From: Zygnema circumcarinatum SAG 698-1b | Taxonomy: Eukaryota; Plantae; Zygnematophyceae | Length of the DNA stretch: 64,000 bases | Reading direction: 5' to 3' | Assembly: GCA_037447605.1 (NCBI GenBank) | Contig: CM074808.1 | Coordinates: forward strand, 3,720,001 to 3,784,000 | Shown: positions 46,229-64,000 of the stretch, piece after piece | Position numbering within the stretch: position 1 is the first letter of the stretch | Layout: every line of letters begins with the position of its first letter | Program-made: the position numbers and the translations under genes | Notes under the pieces: generated by a model | What the model was told of the DNA's origin: nothing | The model's database searches: none | What the model saw: only the letters and a program-made list of their open reading frames with translations

Positions 46229-49160
46229 ATGAAGCGATGCACACATGTTCGCATGTTACTCCAGCTGATGCTCTTTAGTTTAGTTCTTCACGTAAGGGGA
46301 GCTCTGGAGACGCCTTTCTGCCTCACATACGTTCGTTCCAACGGTTACCGTTGTGCAGAGTATCAGGTAATTTCATTTGATTAGCTGTTTGCATGCGCTT
46401 GCTGAACCCATTTACAAGTGGGGGGGGGGGGGGGGNNNNNNNNNNGGGGGGGGGGGGGGGGGGCTTAGAAACATGACTAATGTTTATTCAATTGTTTGAA
46501 ATCCGTTTTTGTAGACAACCACTATCGATGGCTATGTGTTAAATATCCAAAACATTGTGCCTTCCCCCAATTCTCCATCATCAAATTCGGGAACACCGAC
46601 TTTCTCCGGCGCAGCAGCAACGGCAGCTCTCCCAAGCACACTCGGATCTGGAAATGGAAATTTCACAGAATCTCTGACAGCATTGATAGCATGCAATTCT
46701 TCAAACATTGTCGAAGCCATCAATGGGGAGACCGGTACACTCAAACTCCATCGCAGAGTATTGAAAGGAAGAGCCCTGTTTCTTCAGATTACTGTACATG
46801 CATGTTTTGACTACTCTTAAGAGGACAACAACCTTCATTCTTCCTTCTGCAAACAAAGTTTACTCAGAAAAGATTGCTCCCAGAGCATTCCATCTTGAAA
46901 TTTGTTCGCTAACTTTTGAAAAGCTTGCAGCAGCTTGTTCGCCATCGCCAGCAACGCCGTCGCCACCTCCCCCACCTCCAGTGTCTGCACCTGTCGTGAC
47001 AAAGAAGCCATCTGTTTTGCTCGACCACGCGATCTTTCTTGGAGGCGAAGTCTGGATCGAGGGGCTCAGTGCAGCCACAAGGCTTCCATTCATATTGACA
47101 GACAATGGCTTTGATGTATGGATCGCAAATCATCGCGGCACGAAATATTCCCCAGATAACATTTTCTACACACGTGACGACTTCGTAAGTTCTCGACGCT
47201 CAAAGCTACCAAAGCAAGATCAATAATTTGCGTAAAGTTTGCAGAAACGCATGTTCAGCCTGAGATGCTCTTGCTTGTACTAATTTACAAACTTGTTGCC
47301 TTGCAGGCTTTTTGGGATTTTAGTTTTGACGAGATTGCTAAGTATGACCTTCCGAACATGCTTGAAGTCATTCAAAAGATCACCGGAAACTCGAAGGTTC
47401 ACTATATAGGCTACAATCAGGTGAGCCAACCGCTTTACATGCTGAAAGGAGTTCATTTTGTTCTTGAAGTGGTACACTTCTCACATTCAAGAAAGGTCTG
47501 ATATCCTTGAACCCTACTTGTGTTTTTTTTAGGGCGCCATGCTTCCCCTTGCAGCGATTTGCTCAATCCCGGAGATTGCGGATAGCTTCGCGTCCATGGT
47601 TCTTATTGGCCCAATTGTATACTTGGCCAACATCACCTCCCCAGTACTCAATGAGTGGGGGAGCGGGTTCACACCTGACCCGGTAAGAGCCTCCCTCTAT
47701 AGCGCCCTTAACGTCATATTAAAGAGGAAAAATGTACAGCTCTTGCTGGAGAAAAAGCTTCAATCCACGCAAGTTTCGGTGTAAATGATTCTATTTTTGG
47801 TCTTCTTTTCTCCACAAACAAACATGTAACTGAGAAACCCGTGGCTTCGTCTCCTCCGCCCCACTTTCCCCCTTATTTTGCAGTTATTTTACGAGTTTGG
47901 TCTTTTGAATGGCGAATACAACATGACTAAGTGAGAACCTCATCCTAATCGCTGCTTACTTGCATTTCAAGGCTGAATCAAGGTTGTCATAGTGTATGCT
48001 TGACACGTACGCTAGGTCAAAACTTAACAATAAGGGGAGTTTATCCACTTAATGCCTGCAGCACAAACGAACTTGAAAGTCTTTTAAGCTTTTTTGGAGT
48101 CAGCATCGTCAACGAATATGGAGGAGGTGATGCCGACGCACTGCTGGGCAACATAACCGGTGATGCTCCCACACCCTGTGACAAGAGCTTCACGTTCCTC
48201 CTTTGATGCTGCTTCTTGACGAGTCTGTCGTCTGAAGGAGAAAGCGCTGAGGCTCACATGTGGTGACGACATTGCAGGGCCCAATTGCTGTGTTTCGGAC
48301 GATACTTTGAAGGTCCTTGGAGCTGAAGTTGATCCGAATTGGGCCGTGGCGAGCTATAGGTAAAGCCGCCGCCTTCCCAGTCCCCACCCCTTCCCTCCCT
48401 CTCCCTCTCCCTCTCCCTCACCCTCTCCCTCTCCNNNNNNNNNNCTCTCCCTCTCCCTCTCCCACTCCCTCTCCCTGTCCCTCTCCATCTCCCTCTCCCT
48501 CTCCCTCTCCCTTTCCCTCTCCCTCTCCCTCTCCCTCTCTCTCAAAACTGCAGTAACGCTTCTTTGAAGTGTCCGGTTTTGAAATATGTTAACTGAATCT
48601 CTGACCATCCCTTTATGTTTTTTCCGTTTGTGTTTGCACGGCACTTGAACCTGGCGCCGAGCTAAAACAGAAATTTGATCCACATACAGCAAGGTCTGAT
48701 ACACCCTCTTCCCTTCTCTCATTCAGTTGGACAATAACCGTCTAAAATTGTCAACCCAAACAAGTCACAATTCAAGATTTTGTCTTAGAATCTATGAGAT
48801 GGTAGACAGACACTCACCCATGTACTCCTTCCTATGCGGCTTCATGCAGAAATACAATCTGGAAACTTCCAATATTGGGACTATTACAACCTCACTATGA
48901 ACCTCGCGAACTACGGCACCCTCACTCCTCCGCCGTACAACCTTGCTAGAATTCCCACAACTCTGCCAACCCTCTTAGTAACCGGCTCACAAGATTGGTT
49001 CGCCGACACCCCCAACATTGAGAGACTTGTTGACTCGCTCGTGTACTCTCCCACACGCTTGAACCTTCCAAATTATGCGCATTTTGATCTCATGTTCAGT
49101 GACAACATCGTGAATGATGTCTACATGCCCATCATTGGTTACCTTCAAGCGCTGGGTTAG
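46229..49160 (+). CDS. Secreted acid-lipase (gastric/LIP1-type alpha/beta hydrolase) homolog with nucleophile Ser replaced by Asn
   Basis: Signal peptide, CLTYVRSNGYRCAEYQ|TTTIDGYVL, LPFILTDNGFDVWIANHRGTKYS, FWDFSFDEIAKYDLP, KVHYIGYNQ|GAM (family GHSQG), GPNCC, FQYWDY...YGTLTPPPYNL, GSQDWFAD and YAHFDL. Some internal junctions are approximate. Confidence 0.85.
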
Positions 49161-49354
49161 ATACATTAACAACAGGGGGGGGGCGATTGGGGGGCGAATG
49201 TGAAATATATAGTATGGGAAGTGTTTGTTAGAGTCTCCATTTGATGCGGTAATGGAAGAATTTTCAACATGTAGGTTAGCGCTGATTCCGTCTGTGAATT
49301 ATCTTCCAGGACGTGTTCCTGATTTTGTGAAATAAGGAGAGCGTTTGGTTTTAT

Positions 49355-49612
49355 GGTTTTTGTAGACAACCACTGTCGATGGCTATGTGTTAAATATCCA
49401 GAACATTGTGCCTTCCCCCAATTCTCCATCATCAAATTCGGGAACACCGACTTTCTCCAGCGCAGCAGCAACGGCAGCTCCCCCAAGCACACTCGGATCT
49501 GGAAATGGAAATTTCACAGAATCTCTGACAGCATTGATGGCATGCATTTCTTCAAACAATGTCGAAGCCATCAATGGGGAGACCAGTACACTCAGACTCC
49601 ATCGCATAGTAT
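49355..49612 (+). pseudogene. Isolated duplicate of lipase exon 2
   Basis: Highly similar copy of ~46505-46760, including its splice acceptor, lying ~200 bp downstream of the lipase stop and ending in an (ATTA)n tract. Confidence 0.85.
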
Positions 49613-50404
49613 TAATTAATTAATTAATTAATTAATCGGATTAATTTACATGCATGCTGTGACGCCCCTAAAGAGAAAAACGTCCATTCTTCCTACTGCA
49701 GTTTCAGAGCGAACAATTTGATCGGCGGAGGCTTTGCTAGTCCTCGATAACCAATGGTTGGGAACCATTGGCAATGGCTGGAAGGCTAACGGACCAATAG
49801 TTGGTAACCAATGGTTGATCCAGCAGTGCGACCTATGCCGTACTGTACGGTTAACCAAAAACTGAACTGTCCTCATACACATGGAAAATAGCGTCGCAAA
49901 TGTTTTGAGTTCTTATGTAAACTACGGAAAGATTCGCCACACGAGTGGTCTCCTTGTCGTTTTGGAAATTGTCCTTTCCTAACGGTCACTCATGTCGTGT
50001 ACATAATGACGCATTATATGACGTCACATAAACGTACGTCCACCGACATTACGTCATTCCGAGTTTCAACTGTCCAGTGTTCGTACACTCCTTGCGGAAA
50101 TTTCTTAAATTATTTTGTCTTTTAGTTCTCCTGCAAAATTGTCATTTTTGCTAGACGCCAAAACATGTCACATCCAAACGTCCAAGAAAGGCAGAGACCA
50201 GGACAGCCGCGAAGTTTTGTGCCTCCTTCGCCGCCGTCCCCCCCACTGGGACCTTCAGAGGCCCGAGCCATGGCCCCGGCCATGGCTGCCGTTCGAGGGT
50301 TTTAGGCGCCACGTGGCGGATGGTAAGCGATACCGCTTCCCTTCCTGCTCCTCCAATGCGCCACGTGTCCCATGTTGGCTGCCCCCCCAGTCATATTCCA
50401 CTCC

Positions 50405-53400
50405 ATGGCGCCCTCTCCGGCCGCCACGTGGCGCCATTTCTCCGCCATGGCTCTCCTCTCCCTCCTTTCCTTAAGCTTTCCGACGATCTCCGAAGCTTCC
50501 AATTTGTCTACTGACGCAAGCGCGCTCCTTAAATTCAAGGAGGGCATCTCCAGCGACCCCTCCTCCCTCCTTGTAAGCTGGAGGGCTTCTCCTTCTTCTT
50601 CCAGTCCCTGCCATTGGCTGGGAGTCACTTGCACTTCTGGCAGAGTGACGGCCCTTAACTTTATCGAGGCAGGGTTTAAGGGGTACTTAGCGCCGGAACT
50701 CGGCGACATGGACGAGCTCACGCAGTTGGGGCTCGGGGGAAGCTCTTTATCGGGGCCGGTCCCTGAACCCTTCGGAAACCTAAAGTCACTACGAGTGCTT
50801 AACCTCTCCCAAAACTCCTTTGAAGGCTCATTTCCGAAGCCCATCCTTCGGCTCACCCTCCTCGAAGAATTGGACTTATCTTTCAACTTTTTTGTGGGGT
50901 CGATTCCGAGTAATATTGGGAATTTGTCCCTTCTAAGAGTGCTGAACCTTGGAGACAATTCTTTTTCCGGGAAAATTCCGAATTCAATGTGGGAGCTCTT
51001 AAACCTTGAGACTCTTCGATTGTCGAACAATGCGCTGACCGGACCCTTGTCTCCGGGAATTGGAAACCTCACAAATGCAACCCATGTTTACTTTTCCATG
51101 AACTATTTGTCGGGCCACATCCCCTCTCATGTTGGAAACATGAAAAGTGTGAAGTCCCTTTGGCTAGACAACAACATTTTCGGCGGCCCCATTCCTCCGG
51201 AAATTGGGAAACTTCCAAACCTTGAGTCTCTGAACTTGAATTTCAATCAACTGAACGGCAGCATTCCTCCCAATCTCTTCGATCCATGTCTGTCACTTTT
51301 TGGAATCGGTATTCACCATAACCTGCTCACTGGACCCCTCCCTTCAACCCTTCAAAACTGCTTCGTTCTCAGCTACTTCTTCGCAAACGACAACCAACTC
51401 AGCGGTAACCTCTCGGCTCAAGTCGACTGGTCTTTTTTTTCTCTCCTTGAAGAAGTGGCCTTGGATCATAATCTCTTTTTTGGCCCCCTCCCTCCCTCTA
51501 TTGGCTTTGAAGGCTCTCTCCTATCGCAGCTCCTCCTCTCCTTCAACAACCTCACGGGACCGATCCCGGAATCGTACGCATTCTTATCTGAACTCACCGT
51601 CTTGGACTTGAGCTCTAATCCCCTCAACTGCACCCTGAACCCTATCTTGTCAAACTGTACAGCTCTCGAAGCCATGTACCTGCAAAATTCATCACTTTAC
51701 GGCCCCATTCCTACCGAATTCGGCAACCTGCTGAACATGACTTTTTTGGGACTTCAAAGTAATTCCCTTTCTGGTCCTATTCCTGGGGAACTCTTCTCAT
51801 GCTGCATTTACAAAAACTTCTCAATTTGGCTCGACGACAACCGGCTCAATGGGTCTCTTCCTCCAAACTTTGCCAATACAAATCTTGAAGAGCTCTCTGT
51901 CCCAAGAAACCGACTTTCAGGACCTCTCCCGGACGTGTTTGGAGGGTGTCGGTCTCTCACTCGCCTGCAAATTCAGAGCAATTTCTTCACAGGGCCTCTC
52001 CCTCCCTCCCTCTCCAATGTCACTACCCTCACATACTTTCATGCGGAGCATAACGCTTTCAATGGGTCAATTCCGCCCAATCTTTTCAACCCCATCCTCT
52101 ATGAGTTAGACCTCTCTGACAACAGCTTTTCAGGGCCCCTGCCATCATTTGGGCCTTCCTTAGTGAGGCTGATATACCTTAACTTATCTCACAATCAGTT
52201 CGAGAATGTGGAGCCACTTGAGCTCTCTCTTCAGAACTCGTTGAATATTTTGGACTTGAGCTCTAACAAGCTGGAAGGCGCCCTCTCTGTTTCGAGTGAT
52301 GAAGTGAAGGACTCCCCCCTCATAACCCTCGCTCTCTCTCACAACCTCCTCAATGGCTCCATTCCAAGCAGTCTTGCAACCCTAAAAGAACTCTCATCTC
52401 TGACTCTCAGCCATAACAATTTCGATGGCACGATTCCCACCGAACTTCGAACCCTAACCCTCCTCCAAAACCTCTCGCTGTCCAATAACAAACTGACAGG
52501 TGGCGTCCCCTTGGAACTCGGAAACTTGTCCCTTCTCGGCATGTTAGAGCTCGACAACAACCTTCTTTCTGGCCCTATTCCTCCCCATATTGCCAATTGC
52601 ACTATTTTAAGCATCCTCCGACTTAGCAATAACGAACTCTCTGGGCGAATTCCAGCGGAACTCGGAAACCTTTCTGCTCTCGTTGAGCTCAATCTTTCCT
52701 CCAATTTTTTGACCGGAAAAATCCCCGATGGTTTGTCGGGCCTCTCACTGCTCAAGATAGTCGATTTCTCCAACAATGAGCTGTCAGGACCTATTCCAGT
52801 GGGAAATCTCAGTAATTTCACTGCCTTAGCTTTTGCAAACAATCGAGGTTTATGCGGGCTGCCTTTGGAGCTCTGTCGAAGCAGCAAAACTCTTTCAGCC
52901 GGAGCAGTTGCAGGCATAGTGATAGGAGCTTTGGTTCTGACTGCAAGTATTGTGTTAGTGGTTCTCTATCTTATGCACCAACATTGGAGGTCAATACTTG
53001 ATAAAGGAACTCTGGAATTGTACCACAAATTGCCCTTCCGGCTCACATATGCGAGCATCTTACAGGCGACAGATAATTGGTCAGACGAGGCTTTACTCGG
53101 CACAGGTGGTTTTGGCTCAGTTTACAGGTATGTGCTTTTTTGCAGGAGGTCTGGGATTAGGCTCAATGGCTGACACGGGGTCCATATTGTGGTGAGAAAA
53201 CGGAAATTTTTAGAATTAAACGGCTTCATATGAGCACTTACATCTCCAAAAAATTGTCATTCAAACCCTAATTGCTTGTTTTTCTCATACCAATCATGCT
53301 GAAATATTATGTTCATATTGTAATTGTAGTTGGAAGTTGCTTGGTGCTGTCTGTGCAGGGCTGTGCTTGCAGATGGGGAAACCATGGTGGCCATCAAGCG

Positions 53401-54160
53401 GCTGGCGGAGGGAAGCAGCCAAGGTCTGAAGGAGCTGCGGACGGAGATCCGTACACTGGGGCAGCTAAAGCACCGAAACCTTGTGAAGCTCATTGGCAGC
53501 TATACAAGTGAGAGTGAAGCCCTCCTGATCTATGAATTTCTCCCTGGTGGAGACCTGGAAAGTCATCTCTACGGCAATAAGTCTGAGTTCGACAATTGGG
53601 TCACAAGGTATAATGTGCTTCTGGGAGCAGCAAATGGGCTCAAATATCTGCACCATAACAACAAACCTGCCATCATTCACCGCGACATTAAGCCCCCCAA
53701 CATCTTACTAGACAATGACTTAGAGGCCCGTGTGGCAGATTTTGGATTAGCGAGGGAGATTAACATAGACAAGCAGACCCATCTATCTACAGCGGTCTCC
53801 GGCACGGTAGGGTACATGCCGGTGGAGTATTTTCAGCTGGGTTTAGTGACCCCAAAAATCGATGTGTATGCTTTTGGGGTTGTCATCCTTCAAGTTCTCA
53901 CTGGGAAGCGACCAACTGATGTGACTCTTGGGGAGGAGGGGCTCCCTCATTGGCTGAGTGAGCTATGGTGTAAGGGCAGGGCGAGAGAGGCACTTGACCC
54001 CAAGATGAGGGTGGAGGAGGGAGAGGTGATGCAAGTGATGGGGACTTTGAAGCTTGGGCTCATGTGCTCTTCGAAGAGGGCTGATTCGCGGCCGACGATG
54101 GAGGAGGTGGTGCTTTTGTTGGAGCATGTCGACATGTTTGGTTTGAAGATCGATGCATAA
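50405..54160 (+). CDS. LRR receptor-like kinase, EMS1/BRI1 (LRR-X)-like; 2 exons (50405-53127, 53359-54160)
   Basis: Signal peptide, N-cap PCHWLGVTC, more than 20 LRRs, C-cap NNRGLCG, TM, LPFRLTYASILQATDNW, LGTGGFGSVYR|A intron at the same position as in the 26893 gene, HRDIKPPNILL, THLSTAVSGTVGYMPVEY. Confidence 0.93.
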
Positions 54161-54801: not shown

Positions 54802-57800
54802 CTATCTTGGTATATCCTGACTTGTTCCCGGCGTGCAGGGCCGCGGCCCTGGATACGATGCTCCCGGAGCACATAGAGTCGCACCCTTCGGAATCGACGA
54901 ACTGCTTCTGCACACGCTGCCTCCGTTGAAACACTTCAACACGTTCAAGTCGCAGAAAAAATAGGAATTCGCCATAGAGGGACAAGTGGATGAACCGGAA
55001 CTCAGTTGGACGATCTTTGCGAGCTTTTTGTTAATGTTGGTTTGGGTGCATAGCGGGCAGCCGGTATCGCCGAAGTCTTCAGGGATAGCAGGTCGGATAC
55101 AAACCTGTCATGTTAAGATAGAAAAGAAAGGAAAGTCCCCTCTATGATCAATGTGAAATTTTATAGTGTCCAGAACAGGCAACTTTTTAGGGTTTTGGGT
55201 TACATTTTTGAGAAGCTTCAGTGTTTTCTATGTTTGAGAGATGTGAGTGGAGGGAGAGGACCCACCAACTCTCCTGCGAGAAGATTGTCACAACGAATGC
55301 CGGGATTCAACGAAAAGAAACTCAGAGCCGTTGTTGTTCCGACGTAAAGGAAGCTGCAGCCAATTCCTACTTCAAACTCTGCAATCATGTGGTAATCTCC
55401 GCATCGCGGATTTCGGAAGCGGTTTCCGGGTTGCACACATATCTGCAAACGAAGATGAAATTCTCAGTGAAATTCATAGAATGACTGATCTTAAAAGCTT
55501 ATCAGGTTCAATTGCATACAGCATTTGGTTCGCGAATCAAAATGAAAGTAGAAGACGAGCTCTCTTTCCCTCTCCCTCTCTCGCTCCCTCTCCTTCTCCC
55601 TCTCTCCCTCCCTACCCTCTCCCTCCCTCCCTGGCCAGTCGCTTCCTCCCCCCTTTGCCCTGGCCCCTGTTGTAGCAAAAGATCGACTCTTTTTGTGAGT
55701 TTAATTATTGTTCATACCGGGAGATGTGTGGGCAAAGCAACAAACGGAGAGCAGTCAAGACCAATTCGTGCGTTGATTTCAGCCAATTTCGCCACAGAGA
55801 GCGTGTATGAAGGATCAGAGAATGTTGCAGCAATACTCGAACAGGAGTCTCCCTGCATTCAAACTTCTTCATCTAAGTCGCAAAAATACAGCCTGATAAT
55901 GCATGCAGCATTTGTAAGATATAGACCACTGTCACAATTTCAGAACGATGAACCTTCCAAAGCTTCGTAATGTTCCAACATGATTTTGCCTGCTTCAAAT
56001 TTGAGTGGATGCAGAGTTGTAGTTACATATTCCACTGCTTGGAAGAAGTTACTCACCTTTACTGTTACATACATCACCGCGCATTCGATTCCATCCGTAG
56101 CAATTGGTCCAGCGTTGATCACAGTATTTCCAGGCACAAGTCCTGCTATACAGAACTGTTGAAGATACTGGGAACATGGAACAACAGAAAGTAGCAGATC
56201 ACCCACATCAGGTTGCTGCATTACAGACCTTGAAAAAAAACCGCATGTGCACAGAAAAAATGCGGATATGTGAGGAGTCAAACTTGAATCATGAATAGAG
56301 AGATTTTTTTCAGCAGTGCTAACTTACTGGGTTGATATAATAGAGCTCCTGAATGGTCACATTAGCTAAGATAGCGAGTCGATCACATGATAACCCTCCC
56401 GGAGGTACAACAATTGTGGGGTTCACATTGAACGCATTTGCATCCGCTGCAGAATGCATATACCATGTCAGATCGTATCATCGTAAGTACCAAAGGAAAG
56501 AAACTCCCAAACCAAAACATATGAATAATGAAGAGCAAGGGGTTCATCTCACCCGGAATGCAGATGGGAGTATTATCCAGAGCGCGGTTGCCCACAATGA
56601 ACCCCGGAGGGAATGTGCAGTCACATGTGTACCCCCCAGCGCCGTCATTAACGCACCTACAGTGGCATGGAAATACTGTTCAAAAGGGGGGGGGGGGAGG
56701 GGGCCGGGGGAGGGGGGAGGAGGGGGGGGGGAAGAGGGAGGGGGAGGGGGAAGGGAAGGAGAGGGGAAGAGGGGGGAGAAGGGGAAAGGGGAAAGCTAGG
56801 GAAAGGAGGGGAGTGGCGGGGTGGGGCGAGGGGGGAGGGGGGAGGGAGAGAGGGGGAGGTGGAGAGAGTGGCGGAGGGGGGGGGGTGGAGGAAGAGGGAA
56901 AGGGAGAGCTGAGGGTTGAGAGGGAGCGGGAGGTAGGTGAGGAGGCGGAGGGGGAGGAAGCGGGGAGGATGGAAAGGAGGAGGGAGAGGAAGAGGAAAAG
57001 ATGGAGAGAGGCTCACTTGCCAACACCGCAGGGGTTGAAGGAGTGGGAGTCGCACACGTTAGCTGCACACGGCAATTCCGCTTTTCACTGAGACACTTGA
57101 AAGATTGAAACGAAAGACATAGCATTCTGAGATTGCAGAATATTTCACTTCAGCGATTCAAAGTTTGACACGTTTCTTATACAGGAGGGAAGAATTAGCT
57201 ATGCTTTAATGCTACGCATACATTACCGTGAGAATTATTAATTGTCATTTATATCTTGGAAATTAAAAGAGAACGAAGTCTATCTTACACAATGCACAGA
57301 CTTGATCTTGTCCAGTTGAACTCGGCTGTGGAATAAAGCCCGCGAAGCATCTACAGGTGGCGGTGGTCGCATTCGAAGAAAGGCATCTCCCTCCTCCACA
57401 AGGATTATCATAAATTCCTCCATCGCATGCAGTTACTGCAAGAAGAAAGTATTATTTCATTCAGGAAGATGTCTATGTACATAAAAAAAGCTTATAACTA
57501 CACAAACACATAAACATACAGGCAAGAGAAGGTAGTAGTTATCTAGGCAAGAGAAGCTTGGGCAACTTACAAGTTCGTGATGGAGGGGGCGGAGGATGAA
57601 ATGGAGGTCGAGGAGGAGGATTTCGTGGGGGAGGAACGGAAGAGGGAGGAGGACTCCCTGCCGCACATATCAACATTAATTTTCCTTAGAATTATATCTT
57701 CTTCAGAATGTGCTCGAATCACACCGCTAGGGTTCAAGATGATTCTACTTATAATTTGCAATAAGTGACCTTATATGCACAGAAGTGGATGCAGGAGGCT

Positions 57801-58312
57801 CATTATGCATTGGGGTTGTTGATTAAACTTACAAAGAAGGCGCCTTTTTGCGACAGAGCTGCCCGCCCTGACTGGATAAGGATCGATTACTGGATATGTG
57901 GGAGAAACCATGTACATGTTACAAATTCCTGTTCCGTACATGTCCTGGCGAATGCGCATGTAGCCACTTTCTCCCCATGCAGGGCCCCATGAGTTTTTAG
58001 CAATCCAAAAGGGCACATCTCCTTCCACGCCATACCCAACAACGACCATGTTGTGGTTCGGAGTACCCACACAATCCGGGTCGCTAAAAATACCCTGAGG
58101 ACCATAGGAATTTTTCGAACGAGGATTAATAATTGTTAATCAATTCATTAATTGTTAATTGATAATTTTTTATTAATTTTGAAGCCTCTACTTTGACAGA
58201 TGGAGCAAGAAAGGGAGGGCAGGGAGGGGAGGGGAGAGAGCGCGCAGGAGAGAGCGAGAGCGAGCGAAGGTGAGCAATTGGGGAGAGAGAGGAAGAGGGA
58301 CAGAGAGAGGGA

Positions 58313-58371
<59 letters not shown>

Positions 58372-61300
58372 TTTCTTGCATGAGCAAGCTACAGTGCTGG
58401 ACTTCGAACATCACATCACATGCTTTCGGTTAATAATGATTTTCTCACTCACCCCATTATATTCATAAAATCCTCGAACAGAAGTGGAAAGTGCGATGAT
58501 CGCAGGTTGACTGTCAACAACTTTCATCAAAGCGAATGCGTTCTCGGTCGGAACTTGTTCCCACCCTATCACTCTGCTCCTCGAATTATCATACGAGGAA
58601 TTTTCCTGCAAGTTCAGGCCAAGCAGCACTTGAAGATTCATGTTTCAGAAACAATATGTTCTATGCCTGAAGAACGCTCTTGAAAAAGTCTCACGAACTC
58701 TGGTCCTATTATGGGAATAAGCGGTAGAAACTCGCATGAAGTAGCACAAGAAATAGAAAATACATTTCCAAACTCCATACCAAGAAAGAGAAAAGGTGCG
58801 AGTAGAGTTCACCTTCCTTGCATCGCATGATCCTTCAGTCACATCCAATAAGTTGGGATATCTGAACTCGTCATTCAATCCCCCCCTTTGAGCAATGTAT
58901 TCCAAAGCATCGTTAGGGTCTCCCCCTTTACAAGTTGACCCGAAACGTGGCATGCAGTCAAGCAGCTGCTGCATGGAGAGCTGCGGACCGGACATGATGT
59001 TGTCATTGATGTTGATTGCCATCTGCACTGCTTCCACAGCGCTTGCTGCCCAGCAAGCAACTGCCAAAGAAAAAAATAAATAAATAAATAAGATGAAAAG
59101 AAGGGTTTCGGATGAGATAGGTTTTGTCATAATGCATAGGAAATAACATACTGCCTTGTCGGGATAAACAAGAAGATTCAAGGGACTGAGGATTCGAGGG
59201 ATCCTGGAAAAAAAAATGCTAGTTTTAGGACTAAGAATCCTGAATCAAAAAGCTCTAAAGACGCAAAAAATTAGAACATTCTCACACAACTTGTACAGAA
59301 AGATCGGCGGTAAACTCACAGCAACTTCGCTGGTTGCGAACTTTGGTGCTGAAAGGACGCCAATCCACAAAAGTTTGCGGACTTGTAATGCTGTTGTAGC
59401 GGAAGAAGGGAGAAAAGGAAACCGTTTCTATGGGTTGGCAGTTGGGAGCAACGCAGAGAGCTTGGAGCACAGAGCGGTCGATGTATCCGGTGGTCTGAAA
59501 CAGTCAATTGGAAGGACGGGGGGAGAGAGGAGGAGAGGAGGGGGCAGGGGGAGTGGGAGAGGAGAGGGTAGATGGGAGAAAGAGAAAGAGAAGGAAGTGA
59601 GAGAGAAGGAAAGTGGAAGAGAGGAGGGAGGAGGAACGAAGAGAAAGGAAGAGGAGGAGAGAGAAAGGAAGGAAATGGGAAAGGAGAAGATGGAAGAATT
59701 AGAGAGGGTAAAAGACGTGAGGGAAATGAGCAGAGGAAGTGCGAAAGGTATCACCTGCTGCACGTGCAAACAGAGGTTCACTGGAGAATGCCCGCTCTTG
59801 GCAATAAAATCAACTGACCTCACATCGTTTTTAGATACTGTCTTTTATAACTTGCAGCATTGTAGAGCTTTTGGGTAACTTTCTTACTCTGCCGTTGGGG
59901 GGTGGTTCGTACACAACGTCAGTACAGTTAGTGAAGCGGCATGCCCAGCATATTCCCAACACTTCATTGAAGCAGAGGCCCGAGGAGCAGAGGCCCCCAG
60001 AAACCCAGTTTCCACTCTGATCGCACTTACACCATTTACTGCCACAAACAGGTGCCAAAAAAAAATCTATAAACATATAAATAGACATGTATAAGTTGTA
60101 ATTTTGGGTTTTCAGAGGAGTTCAGCAAAGCATGTATGCATCTGCAGAGACAATGCAGAGTCCCGGAACTGAATTTTTCTGGGAAATTGCTAATTGCGAA
60201 AAAAAGAATTTACAAGAAATCAATATTGGGAGGCGGAGTGGGAGGGAACATTTCCGTAAAGCTCACTTACTTGCATCTTCTTGGTTTTGTGTCTGCATAG
60301 GTTCCGTTTGTGCGATTCTTGCAGCATGTGTCATCCCTCTGCGTCAAACCTCCATAAAGCCAAACTGAATTTCATCCATGAGCTCAGGAAACTCTGGTGG
60401 GTCAAAATTGTGAAAGTCCAGGGAAGCCTACTCGCCTTATAACTGCAATTTATAACCCAAAAAGGTATGGATCTACATACCGCAAAAGGTGGGGGAATCG
60501 TCGCATTCCATATAAGGAAGGGAGGGGGAGGGGGAGGCGGGGGAAGAGGGCGAGGTGGAGACCTTAAAGGGGGAGAGGGAAAAAAACTGCGGAATGGTGG
60601 GGAACGGAAGGAAATTATGAGTGAGTTTGAAGGGGGGGGATTTCTAGGGGGTGGGTTCTGGGGGGGTGGTCTTTGGGGGGGAGGAAGGACTACTCGTTTA
60701 GGTAGTTGTCTACTTACAACAGGACCTAGAATGAGCTTTCGTCTGACCTCTCTGTCCTTCTCCCACTCCCCCTCTCCCTCTCTGGGAGCCTCTCTCCCTC
60801 CCCCCCTCCCTCTCTCTTGCAAGTGTTGATCCCCATTGTTTGTTTCATGGAACACAACACGGGTGTTGGGAGTCAGTGAAAGATGGTCTCGGTGAACCAT
60901 GTCATTCAAGGAGGTCGTTGATGCTCTAGGGACGATGTTGTTATGGGCGTGCGGGAAGCCATCGTGGGGAGTGAGAACATGGGGTTGTTCCCCCGGGCGG
61001 GACTTGGGGCACGTCACAGCGCCAAGGCGGTCGCAGCGGCCGGACTGAGTGTTGAAGGCGAGGCTAGGGGCACATGCGAACCACTCCGCCACGCGGCCGT
61101 CTTTGCATTCGCAGAAAGCGCTGCCACACATTCCGTTGTGTGAGAGAAGTGGGGGAGGGGGAGAGGAAGGGGAAAAGGCAGGGAGTGGGGAAGGGGGAAG
61201 GGGGAGGGGGAAGAGGGAGGGGGGAAGGGTGGAGGGGGAGGGGGGAGAAGGGAGGGGGGACGGGGGAGGGGGGGACGGGGGAGGGGGGAGGGAGGAGGGG

Positions 61301-62498
61301 GGAGGGAGGAGGGGGGAGGGGGAAGGGGAGGGGGGAGAAGGGAGGGGGGAGGGGGAGGGGGGGACGGGGGAGGGGGGAGGGAGGAGGGGGGAGGGGAGAG
61401 GGGGAGGGGGGAGGGGGGAGGGGGAGGGGGGAGGGGGAGTGGGGGAGGGGGAGGGGGGAGGGGGGAGGGGGAGGGGGAGGGGGAGGGGGAGGGGAGAGGG
61501 GGAGGGGGGAGGGGGGAGGGGGAGGGGGGAGGGGGAGGGGGAGGGGGAGGGGGAGGGGGAGGGGGAGGGGGAAGGGGAGGGGGAGGGGGGAGGGGGAGTG
61601 GCGAGGGGGAGGGGGAGGGGGAGGGGGAGGAGGAGGGGGAGGGGAGAGGGGGAGGGGGTGGAGTGGAGGGGATGGACGGGGGAGGGGGGGGAGGAGGTGG
61701 AGGGGGGGAGGTGGGGTGGGGGGGAGGAAGGGAGTGGGGGAGGGGGGATTGGGGGAGGGGTGCAGAGGTGGAGAGGGGGCCGGAGGGGGAGGGGGGAGGG
61801 GGGAGGGGGGAAGGGGGATGTAGGGAGGGGGGGGAGGGGGGAGGGGGAGGGGGTAGGGGAAAGAATGGCTGACAACGAGCACAGGAGGAAAAAAGGGAGA
61901 AAGCGTATACACATAAATCTTTACCAACGTTACCTTCTAAAATTCAGAGACTCCCTTCATATTCTATTTTAGGTATTAAAATTAGGTTACATGCGGTGGC
62001 TGGCAGCACCTGCATGGCGGCCACGCGGACAGGTCCGGATGGCGGCCGTCGGGGCGGGCGTGGCAGCACCTTGGGGCTCCGGCCTGCAGCCGTTCGGTAC
62101 TCCCAGAAACATGCGTTTTTTTCTTATTAAAAATTTTAAGCATTTCGATTTTTAATTTAAAATACTCAGATCAATCAAGCATTCAAGACTCAGGTGAGTC
62201 AAACTTACACTATTTAGACCCCTTTTAAATCCGAACCCGAAATAAACTTAGAGAATTTTACCATATTTTAAAAAGCGTAATAAAAAAACATGCATGCATG
62301 CATGCATGCATTCCACGTGGCTTCTCCAAAATTCCCCACCGTGATGACGCCTGCATTGGCGTCAGCATTTTCCCCTGCGACGTATCGCGCGTTGACACGT
62401 GTCCCCGGAAGCCCAAAAAATCCACCGGAAATTCCAAAATTCACCAAAAATGAAAACAGAAATAGCCTGAATGCCGCATAGCTGGAGGCCCTCTCCAT
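54802..62498 (-). CDS. Secreted multidomain protein: SP - 2x CBM14 (peritrophin-A) - papain C1A protease - 2x EGF-like - 4x LysM; 17 exons, about 1019 aa
   Basis: Exons: 62340-62498, 62010-62083, 60481-61120, 60271-60338, 59888-60038, 59320-59494, 58813-59060, 58453-58605, 57833-58094, 57289-57435, 57017-57062, 56553-56656, 56328-56446, 56057-56155, 55718-55852, 55266-55442, 54802-55104. All GT-AG and phase-compatible, totalling 3060 nt. Catalytic QRSCFACW, NHNM and KNSWG present; LysM example [13 protein letters not shown]. Confidence 0.85.
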
Positions 62499-63240
62499 TT
62501 TTTTTTCCTCCCCTTTTTTGTTTTTTTTTTTTTTTTTTTCTGAGTAAGTATAGAAGGGCGGCAAGGAGCGAGCGGGGGGACAACCTCGAATAAACGACAA
62601 AAAATCGTTCCGTACAAGGTGGCAGCTTACGTCACCGGGGTCGAAATTCGGCGGCAATGTCGGTGCCGTACAAAAGGATCAGTACTGTACTAAACGACAA
62701 AAAGTCTCTGTCCCAACGACCGGGACATACCTCATGGAACGCAGTTTAGCGTAGTCAATAACCAGGAAATACGGGCAGTTTTCTCCCCGCTGATTGGCTC
62801 TCGCCACGTGTATTAAATAAATCCTTCCTTTTTTTTCCAATTGCCGTAAATTCCACGATAGACGACAAAACGGTACGGCATATTGACCGGGCGGCCTGTG
62901 CCGCAACCAATCGGGAGCTGCCGAGTTTCAGAATTAACGGCTTGTGCGAAAGGGCGGCCAGTTTGTCGTTGTGCGTCCGCTGGCGGCATATCGGCAATAT
63001 CGCCAACGTATCGAGTTTGAAAAAGTCCAGACATATTCTGACATGAGACCAAGTTTGGCTCTAGAGAGATGAACAATTGCCCAACAAATCTTGCCTTAGC
63101 GCGTGACTCCCCTTCCAATACCCAACAACACCATGTTCCCTAGGAACAACATGCGTCCCCTAGCCCCATTTGCGCGGTTGTTGTTGTTGACTCTCATGAC
63201 CCATTCATGCCTGCCTACCTACCTGCCTGCTATCGCAACC

Positions 63241-64000
63241 CTAAAATTCCTCCCCCATTGCGAGGGCCATGGCCCGCCTCTTCAGCGGCCCCGAGCGGTG
63301 CACCGCCGCGAGGCCCACATTGCGCGCGAAGGCGAATGGCGAAAATTGAACCGCGAAGACGCGGTGGAGGGCGTCGAGCCCCGCCACCATCGCGAGGTTC
63401 GCCCGCCGCCGCCGCGCCTCGTACTCGCCCAAAAGCGCCGCCTGCCGCACCATGTTCAGACACTTAACAATCGGCAATCAAGGAAGGAGGGCTGCACATC
63501 TACGCTCATGCATAGAGCATCCTCCGTGGAAATCAACAAGACAGGGAAGGTGACGAAGATAAATTTGAATACAAAGGAAAAGACGTTTTCAGGGGTGAGC
63601 GGTGCCTTACATCGCCGACATCACTCCCAAGTGATGCACCATTTTCGAGTATGTCGAGAAGCGCCCCTGCATCAGCCATCCCCAAGTTCGCCCCTTGACC
63701 CGCCAACGGGTGCACGCTGTGGGCGGCATCGCCTATGAGGGCGAGACGTGACGCGACATATGTCGACGCATGCGCCAAGTTCAACGGAAACGACGACCTT
63801 CTTCCGTAGCACGCTACAGCTCGGGGTGGCACATGGAACGCTTCAGTCGTAGAAGGGCTAAGAGAAGAGGGGAAGAAGTTGCCGAATGACGACAGAAAAT
63901 TAGGGTTCGAAGAGGGGAGAGGAGCGTAGCTCTCGACGAGGCTCGAATTCACTTCTTGAACAAAAGCATCATCGGCCATATCTTGCAGTTCCTTTGCATG
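63241..64000 (-). CDS. COQ6: Ubiquinone biosynthesis monooxygenase COQ6, 3' part (5' end beyond the window)
   Basis: RSSFPLNLAHASTYVASRLALIGDAAHSVHPLAGQGANLGMADA, and a last exon ALLGEYEARRRRANLAMVAGLDALHRVF...FARNVGL...AMGEEF*. Confidence 0.88.

Follow-up and report, generated by a model that had tools for sequence, protein, structure and literature searches.

Two pillars of extracellular immunity in land plants are papain-like cysteine proteases (PLCPs) and LysM chitin receptors, which exist there as separate proteins. Land-plant PLCPs of the RD21/C14 type carry an I29 prodomain and a granulin domain and function in the apoplast and in immunity. The CBM14 module binds chitin and is most familiar from animals and fungi. 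In Volvox, a protease and a chitinase with chitin-binding repeats and an extensin-like spacer are said to have been found; the protease is reportedly induced by pheromone and by wounding and carries N-terminal binding repeats, and a defence-like induction has reportedly been proposed for it. Here we describe a gene in a 64,000-nt stretch of the Zygnema circumcarinatum SAG 698-1b genome (contig CM074808.1; hereafter the window, with positions counted from its first letter). Its predicted product joins a C1A papain domain to CBM14, EGF-like and LysM modules. This full architecture, and the algal protease family to which the gene appears to belong, are apparently undescribed.

The pairing of papain and LysM has itself already been catalogued. 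Peptidase plus LysM is among the LysM architectures of green algae, and the Chlamydomonas peptidase is a peptidase_C1 (Zhang et al. 2009, PMC2728734). The original prediction for this locus, made from the sequence alone, held that no characterised protein has such an architecture; this stands for the whole arrangement and fails for the C1 and LysM pairing. Like the Zygnema protein, the Chlamydomonas type combines a papain-family protease with LysM in a green alga. However, the chlorophyte C1-LysM proteins lack both the CBM14 modules and the EGF pair, and in a quick tree comparing the papain domain alone, their papain domains fall near the family described below, not inside it. Many algal C1A proteases lie outside the cathepsin B, F, H and L groups (Martinez and Diaz 2008, PMC2474614). 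By that account, the sole algal C1A protease with known physiology is a Volvox enzyme induced by the sex pheromone (PMC2474614, citing Amon et al. 1998). In the literature searched, we found no paper that brings LysM and papain together for streptophyte algae or for Zygnematophyceae.

Other known proteins share parts of the layout. Land-plant RD21/C14 PLCPs are likewise secreted C1A enzymes of the cathepsin-L type in which a Pro-rich linker is followed by a C-terminal Cys-rich module, but the Zygnema protein has neither their I29 prodomain nor their granulin domain and instead carries EGF, LysM and CBM14 modules. In the LysM chitinases of fern, horsetail and Volvox (PDB 4PXV/5YLG, 5BUM and 5K2L), LysM is tethered by a linker to a hydrolase, and single units fit the LysMs modelled here with a root-mean-square deviation (rmsd) of 1.0–1.2 Å. 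These enzymes have a chitinase catalytic domain and one or two LysMs, whereas the Zygnema protein has a protease and four LysMs. The Thermus thermophilus LysM and NlpC/P60 endopeptidase (PDB 4XCM/4UZ2), one of the top fold matches, also places LysM on a papain-fold cysteine peptidase that targets an N-acetylglucosamine (GlcNAc) polymer. However, this bacterial peptidase is NlpC/P60 and not C1A, acts on the peptide stem of peptidoglycan, and has no CBM14 or EGF. Plant LysM receptor kinases and LYP proteins combine three packed LysMs with a transmembrane (TM) segment and kinase or with a glycosylphosphatidylinositol anchor, a layout that the Zygnema protein does not share.

Gene structure and transcript evidence

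The minus-strand gene is genuine, well expressed and a single transcription unit of 18 exons (Table 1). It runs from an ATG at 62498 to a stop at 54802, which are exactly the bounds first proposed for it. Seventeen exons and a protein of ∼1019 amino acids (aa) had also been proposed; RNA adds an 87-nt Pro-rich exon (57657–57571), and the corrected model encodes 1052 aa in a single open frame over all joined exons. Stop-free minus-strand segments contain recognisable papain, EGF-like, LysM-like and Cys-rich pieces. Scanning for splice sites yielded a provisional model, which was then corrected by RNA. The exons are short, the introns measure 100–900 nt, and every modelled junction is GT-AG. Many introns carry purine-rich tracts on the plus strand.

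The RNA evidence consists of Logan contigs from four public runs that bear the label of the same organism (X2, X3, X16 and X17), aligned to positions 56540–62539. They belong to a set of runs whose share of sampled words, 0.4–0.57, is that expected for exons only (DNA runs give ∼0.8), and they were taken to be RNA because their contigs are spliced and have zero depth over the long intron. Ten GT-AG joints are listed, each in all four runs, with coordinates that include +1 corrections. An eleventh, between exons 6 and 7, appears only as contig pieces, in three runs; together the eleven define exons 1–12. These joints connect the 5′ untranslated region (UTR), the signal peptide, the first CBM14, the Pro-rich linker, the second CBM14, the papain domain and both EGF-like domains, and lead on into the first LysM exon, with spliced contig depths of ∼40–145. 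Spliced contigs from four runs thus bear out the original claim of one transcription unit, linking the modules up to LysM 1.

Longer contigs extend this evidence in both directions. Three runs contain a contig of 2561–2562 nt that begins within exon 3, at 60711, passes through the second CBM14, the protease and the EGF exons, and continues for ∼870 nt past 56553. Since the modelled exons between 60711 and the stop add up to 2517 nt, this contig is long enough for the rest of the gene and leaves ∼44 nt for a 3′ UTR. A loose contig end at 56553 goes on with the letters of 56417–56446, the start of exon 14, and therefore shows where exon 13 ends. The contigs break at different points of exon 3 from run to run and overlap one another, so that exon 3 is continuous and tied to exons 2 and 1. 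At the 5′ end, the contig alignments stop at 62494 with 12–23 extra letters, and a masked T-run starts at 62499. Because the contigs extend at least 12–23 nt past 62494 into the masked T-run, we take the ATG at 62498 to lie inside the transcript.

The junction between exons 12 and 13 sits in a masked repeat, and the four junctions of exons 14–18 lie outside the aligned RNA stretch. Two splice pairs are possible at the former; only 57017/56656 gives a regular six-Cys EGF unit, free of indels with every homologue. The latter were placed by the best GT-AG pairs, by gap-free colinearity with orthologs, among them P0042 (a complete 976-aa open reading frame (ORF) on transcript contigs of SRR8128902-08), by the span of the RNA contig and by the word share. 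Over 55000–60400 the RNA word share is 0.40–0.44, against 0.38 expected with all exons expressed. A first splice model, with exon 2 in another frame, an exon 3 of 1143 nt, an exon 4 starting from 60364 and no 87-nt exon, was refuted by RNA.

The locus is rich in low-complexity sequence. A 720-nt tract at 61140–61860, polypurine on the plus strand and polypyrimidine on the minus strand, is intronic (intron 2, 61121–62009) and has zero RNA depth. All three of its coding-strand frames are open, and it would read as a Pro/Ser-rich protein. Very similar tracts are exonic at ∼60490–60700 (exon 3) and 57571–57657 (exon 10), where they encode both Pro-rich linkers, and polypyrimidine tracts may be the raw material for such linkers. 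At the purine-rich tracts 56734–56765, 59552–59772 and 60516–60792, contigs with unmatched loose ends pile up to a depth of ∼500; these are probably transcripts of other loci that share low-complexity repeats. Separately, an unspliced 314-nt contig (62055–62368) crosses intron 1 in three runs, with a depth of 11–15 against 75–145 for the spliced form in the deepest run, and looks like intron-1 retention or pre-mRNA.

Domain composition and relatives

The predicted protein comprises, in order, a signal peptide, a CBM14 unit, a charged and Pro-rich linker, a second CBM14 unit, a short pre-region, the papain domain, a second Pro-rich linker, two EGF-like domains and four LysM units. Pfam, translation and comparison with the ortholog agree with the order originally predicted. 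Pfam was run on single unspliced exons, one by one. Exons 7 and 9 alone match Peptidase_C1 (PF00112) with 56 and 64 bits, respectively (cut-off 20.7). In the family alignment the catalytic residues Gln419, Cys425, His570 and Asn590 (papain Gln19, Cys25, His159 and Asn175, by alignment) are intact, as had been proposed, and the motifs N-Q-R-S-C, A-C-W-A, N-H-N-M and K-N-S-W-G stand at aligned positions. Judged by its sequence, the protease is a cathepsin-L/bromelain-like member of C1A, closest to bromelain, ananain, ficin and cathepsin L; the nearest solved structures to the domain are plant PLCPs.

The protease lacks a recognisable prodomain. Inhibitor_I29 gave no Pfam match on exon 3, exon 6 or residues 1–300 of P0042; the same search detected I29 in other matched proteins. 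Only ∼50 aa separate the second CBM14 from the mature papain N-terminus. The pre-region in exon 6 contains two Cys and an aromatic F-R-Y motif, the motif being kept across the family alignment, and exon 6 matched no Pfam family. Hydropathy of the whole protein shows a hydrophobic core at aa 10–30, the sole 19-aa window above 1.6, and neither a TM segment after the signal peptide nor a hydrophobic C-terminus. Pfam scans of the exon pieces found no kinase domain, so that on both counts the original prediction holds. The 57 Cys form an even number once the catalytic one is excluded, and there are seven N-x-S/T sites. These features are consistent with a secreted and soluble protein.

Each CBM14 unit is split by an intron. 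The exon-3 part of unit 1 alone reaches 17.1 bits in Pfam CBM_14 (cut-off 22.1), and exon 5 alone has no CBM_14 match. A match at 22.8 bits was rejected, as it included six intronic codons that are absent from the correct 17.1-bit exon. Comparison of the P0042 CBM14 with spliced units 1 and 2 by phmmer gave 5.6e-10 and 4.5e-6, with 0.18 as the best of 2000 shuffles. Both units have in common with the verified CBM14 of P0042 the Cys pattern CC...C-x3-C-x-C...C...C...C and a G-L-x-F-N/D motif. By these comparisons both units are homologous to CBM14/peritrophin-A (PF01607). In each unit the intron is of phase 2 and falls in the codon after the third Cys; this shared position points to duplication of a two-exon CBM14 unit. 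An AlphaFold model of a CBM14 unit had a confidence score (pLDDT) of 46 and was not used. Searches for the window protein itself, or for relatives of the first CBM14 region, returned none in the collections searched, within the length range allowed.

The C-terminal half carries the EGF-like and LysM modules. Exon 11 alone scores 20.4 bits for EGF (PF00008; cut-off 21.5), both EGF-like units show the six-Cys spacing, and at this position Closterium homologues reach 28 bits (EGF) and 26.5 bits (cEGF). Exon 16 alone scores just under the cut-off of 20.9 bits for LysM (PF01476; Table 1). The LysM region of the window protein matches that of P0042 at 7e-30, and P0042 has four LysM stretches (4.3e-13). 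Modelled with AlphaFold (mean pLDDT 74.6), the LysM region of P0042 contains four beta-alpha-alpha-beta units, and its significant Foldseek matches are all LysM proteins, headed by Ecp6 in complex with a chitin tetramer and by CEBiP, together with the Thermus LysM-NlpC/P60 enzyme, NFP and CERK1. Single units of the model superpose on the fern chitinase LysM with an rmsd of 1.0 Å and a TM-score of 0.92. The overall arrangement of the array fits no Foldseek match (TM-score ∼0.2), and its agreement with the CERK1, CEBiP and NFP ectodomains is poor overall (TM-score ∼0.2). The best solved sequence matches of the family LysMs are the chitin-binding LysMs of Pteris (fern), Equisetum (horsetail) and Volvox chitinases, and Closterium LysM units score 27.2–27.5 bits against LysM_RLK (cut-off 27). 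Profile and modelled fold together argue for four LysM units.

Relatives with a similar layout occur in other Zygnematophyceae. Exon 9, searched against 1.84 billion representatives, had 13,783 matches; among those scanned, most were ordinary I29-bearing proteases and three had an unusual architecture (P0004, P0042 and P0069). P0042 has a signal peptide, Pro-rich repeats, one CBM14 (Pfam CBM_14 3.6e-7, 30.6 bits over the full profile), a papain domain (Peptidase_C1, 162 bits), further Pro-rich repeats, two EGF and four LysM units. It is colinear with the window protein from the second CBM14 to the C-terminus, with 39% and 33% identity, and its Pro-rich linker at the exon 10 position is longer. 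P0004 (Closterium sp. Naga37s-1, CAI5502628.1) is a gene model in which two units are fused in tandem; both consist of leucine-rich repeats (LRRs), a Cys-rich segment, papain, two EGF units and LysM. P0069 (Closterium sp. NIES-68, GJP30740.1) contains LRR, papain, EGF and LysM. Further Closterium proteins of 919–1005 aa (including P0155, P0163 and P0164) have a signal peptide, an extensin-like stretch, a legume lectin domain (1.7e-30), papain, two EGF and four LysM units. Spirogloea muscicola SM000013S26461 (P0166) has papain, two EGF units, LysM and a Kazal-like tail. This tail, a Cys-rich extension with a Kazal-like motif at residues ∼740–862, lies C-terminal to the LysM array, and an inhibitor-type module would be odd on a protease.

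Alignment of these proteins (CAI5502628.1, GJP30740.1, P0155, P0163, P0164, SM000013S26461 and P0042) with the window protein shows a constant, colinear core and variable heads. The core extends from the F-R-Y pre-region through papain, two EGF and four LysM units to a conserved Cys-rich C-terminus, and identity among the window protein and its relatives is 26–39%. P0042 and the window protein both have a signal peptide and Pro-rich linkers and differ in having one CBM14 and two, respectively. Of the other relatives, some carry a legume lectin or an LRR as head and some have none; the tandem CBM14 pair is seen in the window protein. As the core is conserved in Closterium, Spirogloea and P0042 together with CBM14, legume-lectin or LRR heads, CBM14 appears to be one of several interchangeable heads. 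An architecture search had been suggested at the outset, and its outcome is divided: the papain-EGF2-LysM4 core is not unique to Zygnema, and the full architecture appears to be new. These comparisons suggest that the gene is one member of a zygnematophyte-wide family with a constant papain-EGF2-LysM4 core and exchanged N-terminal heads. In the quick papain-domain tree the family members cluster (0 of 500 shuffles were as low), and the window protein and P0042 are sisters. Next to them stands P0028, a partial protease without other modules. With P0042 as query, the Protein Atlas yielded nothing beyond generic C1 clusters, and we found no paralogue of the gene elsewhere in the 64-kb window.

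Exon coordinates and neighbouring loci

Table 1. Exons of the Zygnema gene, in window coordinates. Joints observed in RNA are given as the two plus-strand positions that flank the intron.
Exon	Position	Strand	Content	RNA joint to next exon	Other evidence
1	62340..62498	minus	ATG, signal-peptide-like N-terminus, 53 codons, ends in phase 0	62083/62340	
2	62010..62083	minus	First third of CBM14 unit 1 (CC-x16-C), phase-2 end within the codon following the third Cys	61120/62010	Joints on both sides, four runs
3	60481..61120	minus	Rest of CBM14 unit 1 (to ∼61009), charged spacer, Pro-rich linker 1 (∼60687–60517)	60338/60481	Joints, overlapping contigs
4	60271..60338	minus	First third of CBM14 unit 2 (CC-x14-C), phase-2 end within the codon following the third Cys	60038/60271	Joints
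5	59888..60038	minus	Remainder of CBM14 unit 2, GLxFN motif	59494/59888	Joints; aligns with P0042 from residue 174
6	59320..59494	minus	∼50-aa pre-region (two Cys, F-R-Y), papain start, Gln419 at 59332–59330	59060/59320	Contig pieces
7	58813..59060	minus	Papain, catalytic Cys425 at 59055–59053 in C-W-A	58605/58813	Peptidase_C1 7.4e-15; contig piece, joint to exon 8
8	58453..58605	minus	Papain, central part	58094/58453	Joints to exons 7 and 9
9	57833..58094	minus	Papain C-terminal part, His570 at 58055–58053, Asn590 at 57995–57993 in N-S-W-G	57657/57833	Peptidase_C1 2.4e-17; joints
10	57571..57657	minus	87 nt, Pro-rich linker 2 (29 aa)	57435/57571	Joints to exons 9 and 11, four runs
11	57289..57435	minus	EGF-like domain 1, six Cys	57062/57289	Pfam EGF 6.2e-4; joints to exons 10 and 12
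12	57017..57062	minus	First part of EGF-like domain 2		Acceptor from the joint with exon 11; donor 57017 from GT-AG, frame and ortholog fit
13	56553..56656	minus	Remainder of EGF-like domain 2		Donor 56553 from RNA loose end; acceptor 56656 inferred
14	56328..56446	minus	LysM 1, degenerate		2561-nt contig enters at 56446; aligns to LysM 1 of P0042 and Closterium
15	56057..56167	minus	Inter-LysM spacer, first strand of LysM 2		Best splice pair; ortholog-like spacing
16	55718..55852	minus	LysM 2 core		Pfam LysM 4.9e-4, 20.4 bits; splice-site scan
17	55266..55442	minus	LysM 3, eight-residue motif ending N-P-G-I in common with P0042		46% identity to P0042; splice-site scan
18	54802..55104	minus	LysM 4 (degenerate), Cys-rich tail, stop		Translation, alignment, hydropathy

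The convergent neighbour on the plus strand (50372–54160) encodes a large LRR receptor kinase. Its first ORF, of 933 aa, contains many LRRs and a TM segment, and its kinase exons end at 54160. Closterium has LRRs and the papain-EGF-LysM core in one polypeptide; in the window the LRRs belong to a separate gene on the opposite strand. An acid-lipase-like gene at ∼46800–49160 lies between two near-identical repeat copies of ∼300 nt (46496–46820 and 49353–49623), which have ORFs in common on either strand, and an assembly N-run lies near 48440. The upstream neighbour on the same strand (63241–63979, minus) has exons with G-D-A-A-H...G-Q-G, a motif of UbiH/COQ6-type flavin adenine dinucleotide (FAD) monooxygenases; this assignment is by motif recognition only.

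Possible functions of the protease

From the architecture we infer secretion, a glycan specificity, an activity and a biological role. We consider it probable, if well short of certain, that the gene encodes a glycan-docked secreted cysteine endopeptidase that targets GlcNAc polymers, with defence or surveillance as its most likely setting. The LysM array, here together with the CBM14 pair, would hold the enzyme on extracellular chitin, chito-oligomers or peptidoglycan. The Pro-rich stretches, probably glycosylated, would serve as extended spacers, and the protease would cleave proteins close to the docking site. Its likeliest opponents would be chitin-walled parasites or bacteria on the algal surface. 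The role first proposed for the protein, which would dock on parasite chitin or peptidoglycan and then digest wall proteins or set elicitors free, is plausible on the architecture.

Several observations weigh against this proposal. Papain-like enzymes normally need a prodomain for folding and latency, and as none is recognisable here, activity is not certain. P0069 has Ser in place of the catalytic Cys (residues ∼230–240, G-I-S-W-A instead of x-x-C-W-A), and is a pseudo-protease or else marks a switch of nucleophile inside the family. In the window protein, LysM 1 and LysM 4 are degenerate, and no more than one exon comes near the Pfam LysM threshold by itself. Since the LRR and legume lectin heads of relatives do not bind chitin, the common theme of the family cannot be chitin targeting through the head. 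The papain-domain tree clusters the family without proving a single origin, and one clade is neither shown nor excluded. Finally, the runs seem to come from ordinary cultures, and expression in them is high; the gene is thus not obviously induced by infection.

The last point also bears on a serious rival, which we hold to be possible but rather unlikely: a self-directed protease, anchored to the alga's own matrix by its lectin modules and Pro-rich stalks, that would process wall proteins during growth, division or conjugation. It earns its place because expression is strong in four runs of ordinary cultures with no sign of infection, and because relatives carry non-chitin heads (LRR, legume lectin) that are general protein- or glycan-binding modules. 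Extensin-like Pro-rich linkers are, moreover, typical of green-algal matrix glycoproteins, and the one algal C1A protease with reported physiology responds to the Volvox sex pheromone (PMC2474614). Weighing on the other side, CBM14 and LysM both bind GlcNAc polymers, whereas streptophyte algal walls are not known to hold chitin, and the nearest solved LysMs are chitin-binding and come from chitinases. A ligand-gated sensor protease, in which the head and pre-region would keep the enzyme latent until a microbial ligand on the head or LysM frees its activity and so triggers a signal, seems improbable to us. Horseshoe-crab factor C, a pattern-recognition protease zymogen, offers a comparison. The constant catalytic and LysM chassis with heads diversified across species, the absence of the usual I29 prodomain, and the short conserved pre-region (two Cys and F-R-Y) directly before the mature domain would all suit such a sensor; the case for it is one from architecture.

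It is scarcely credible that the protein is an artefact, in which separate neighbouring CBM14, protease and LysM genes were joined by their frames, or the product of a pseudogene. No single read or long-read cDNA covers the whole gene, and the last four junctions are without a direct RNA joint. However, spliced contigs of four runs cross every module boundary to LysM 1, the frame is open over 1052 codons, the complete transcript ortholog P0042 has the same order in one ORF, and genome-annotated Closterium and Spirogloea homologues keep papain, EGF and LysM on one protein. The artefact reading is already close to refuted.

The gene offers a clean example of exon-unit duplication, in its CBM14 pair, and of linkers made from tracts that are elsewhere intronic in the same gene. 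A broader conjecture, doubtful as it stands, is that Zygnematophyceae have an expanded family of extracellular ‘recognition proteases’, with a constant prodomain-less papain-EGF2-LysM4 body and diversified heads, in which the head and/or the LysM units would sense microbial surfaces and gate proteolysis. If this is true, recognition proteases would form a soluble surveillance system beside receptor kinases in the sister lineage of land plants. In the Zygnema gene product, both pillars of land-plant extracellular immunity are fused in one predicted secreted protein, together with CBM14, and this in the algae most closely related to land plants. Should its modules bind chitin or peptidoglycan and the enzyme prove active, the protein would provide a testable molecule for how streptophyte algae handle chytrids and bacteria, and would bear on the evolution of modular recognition before land plants.

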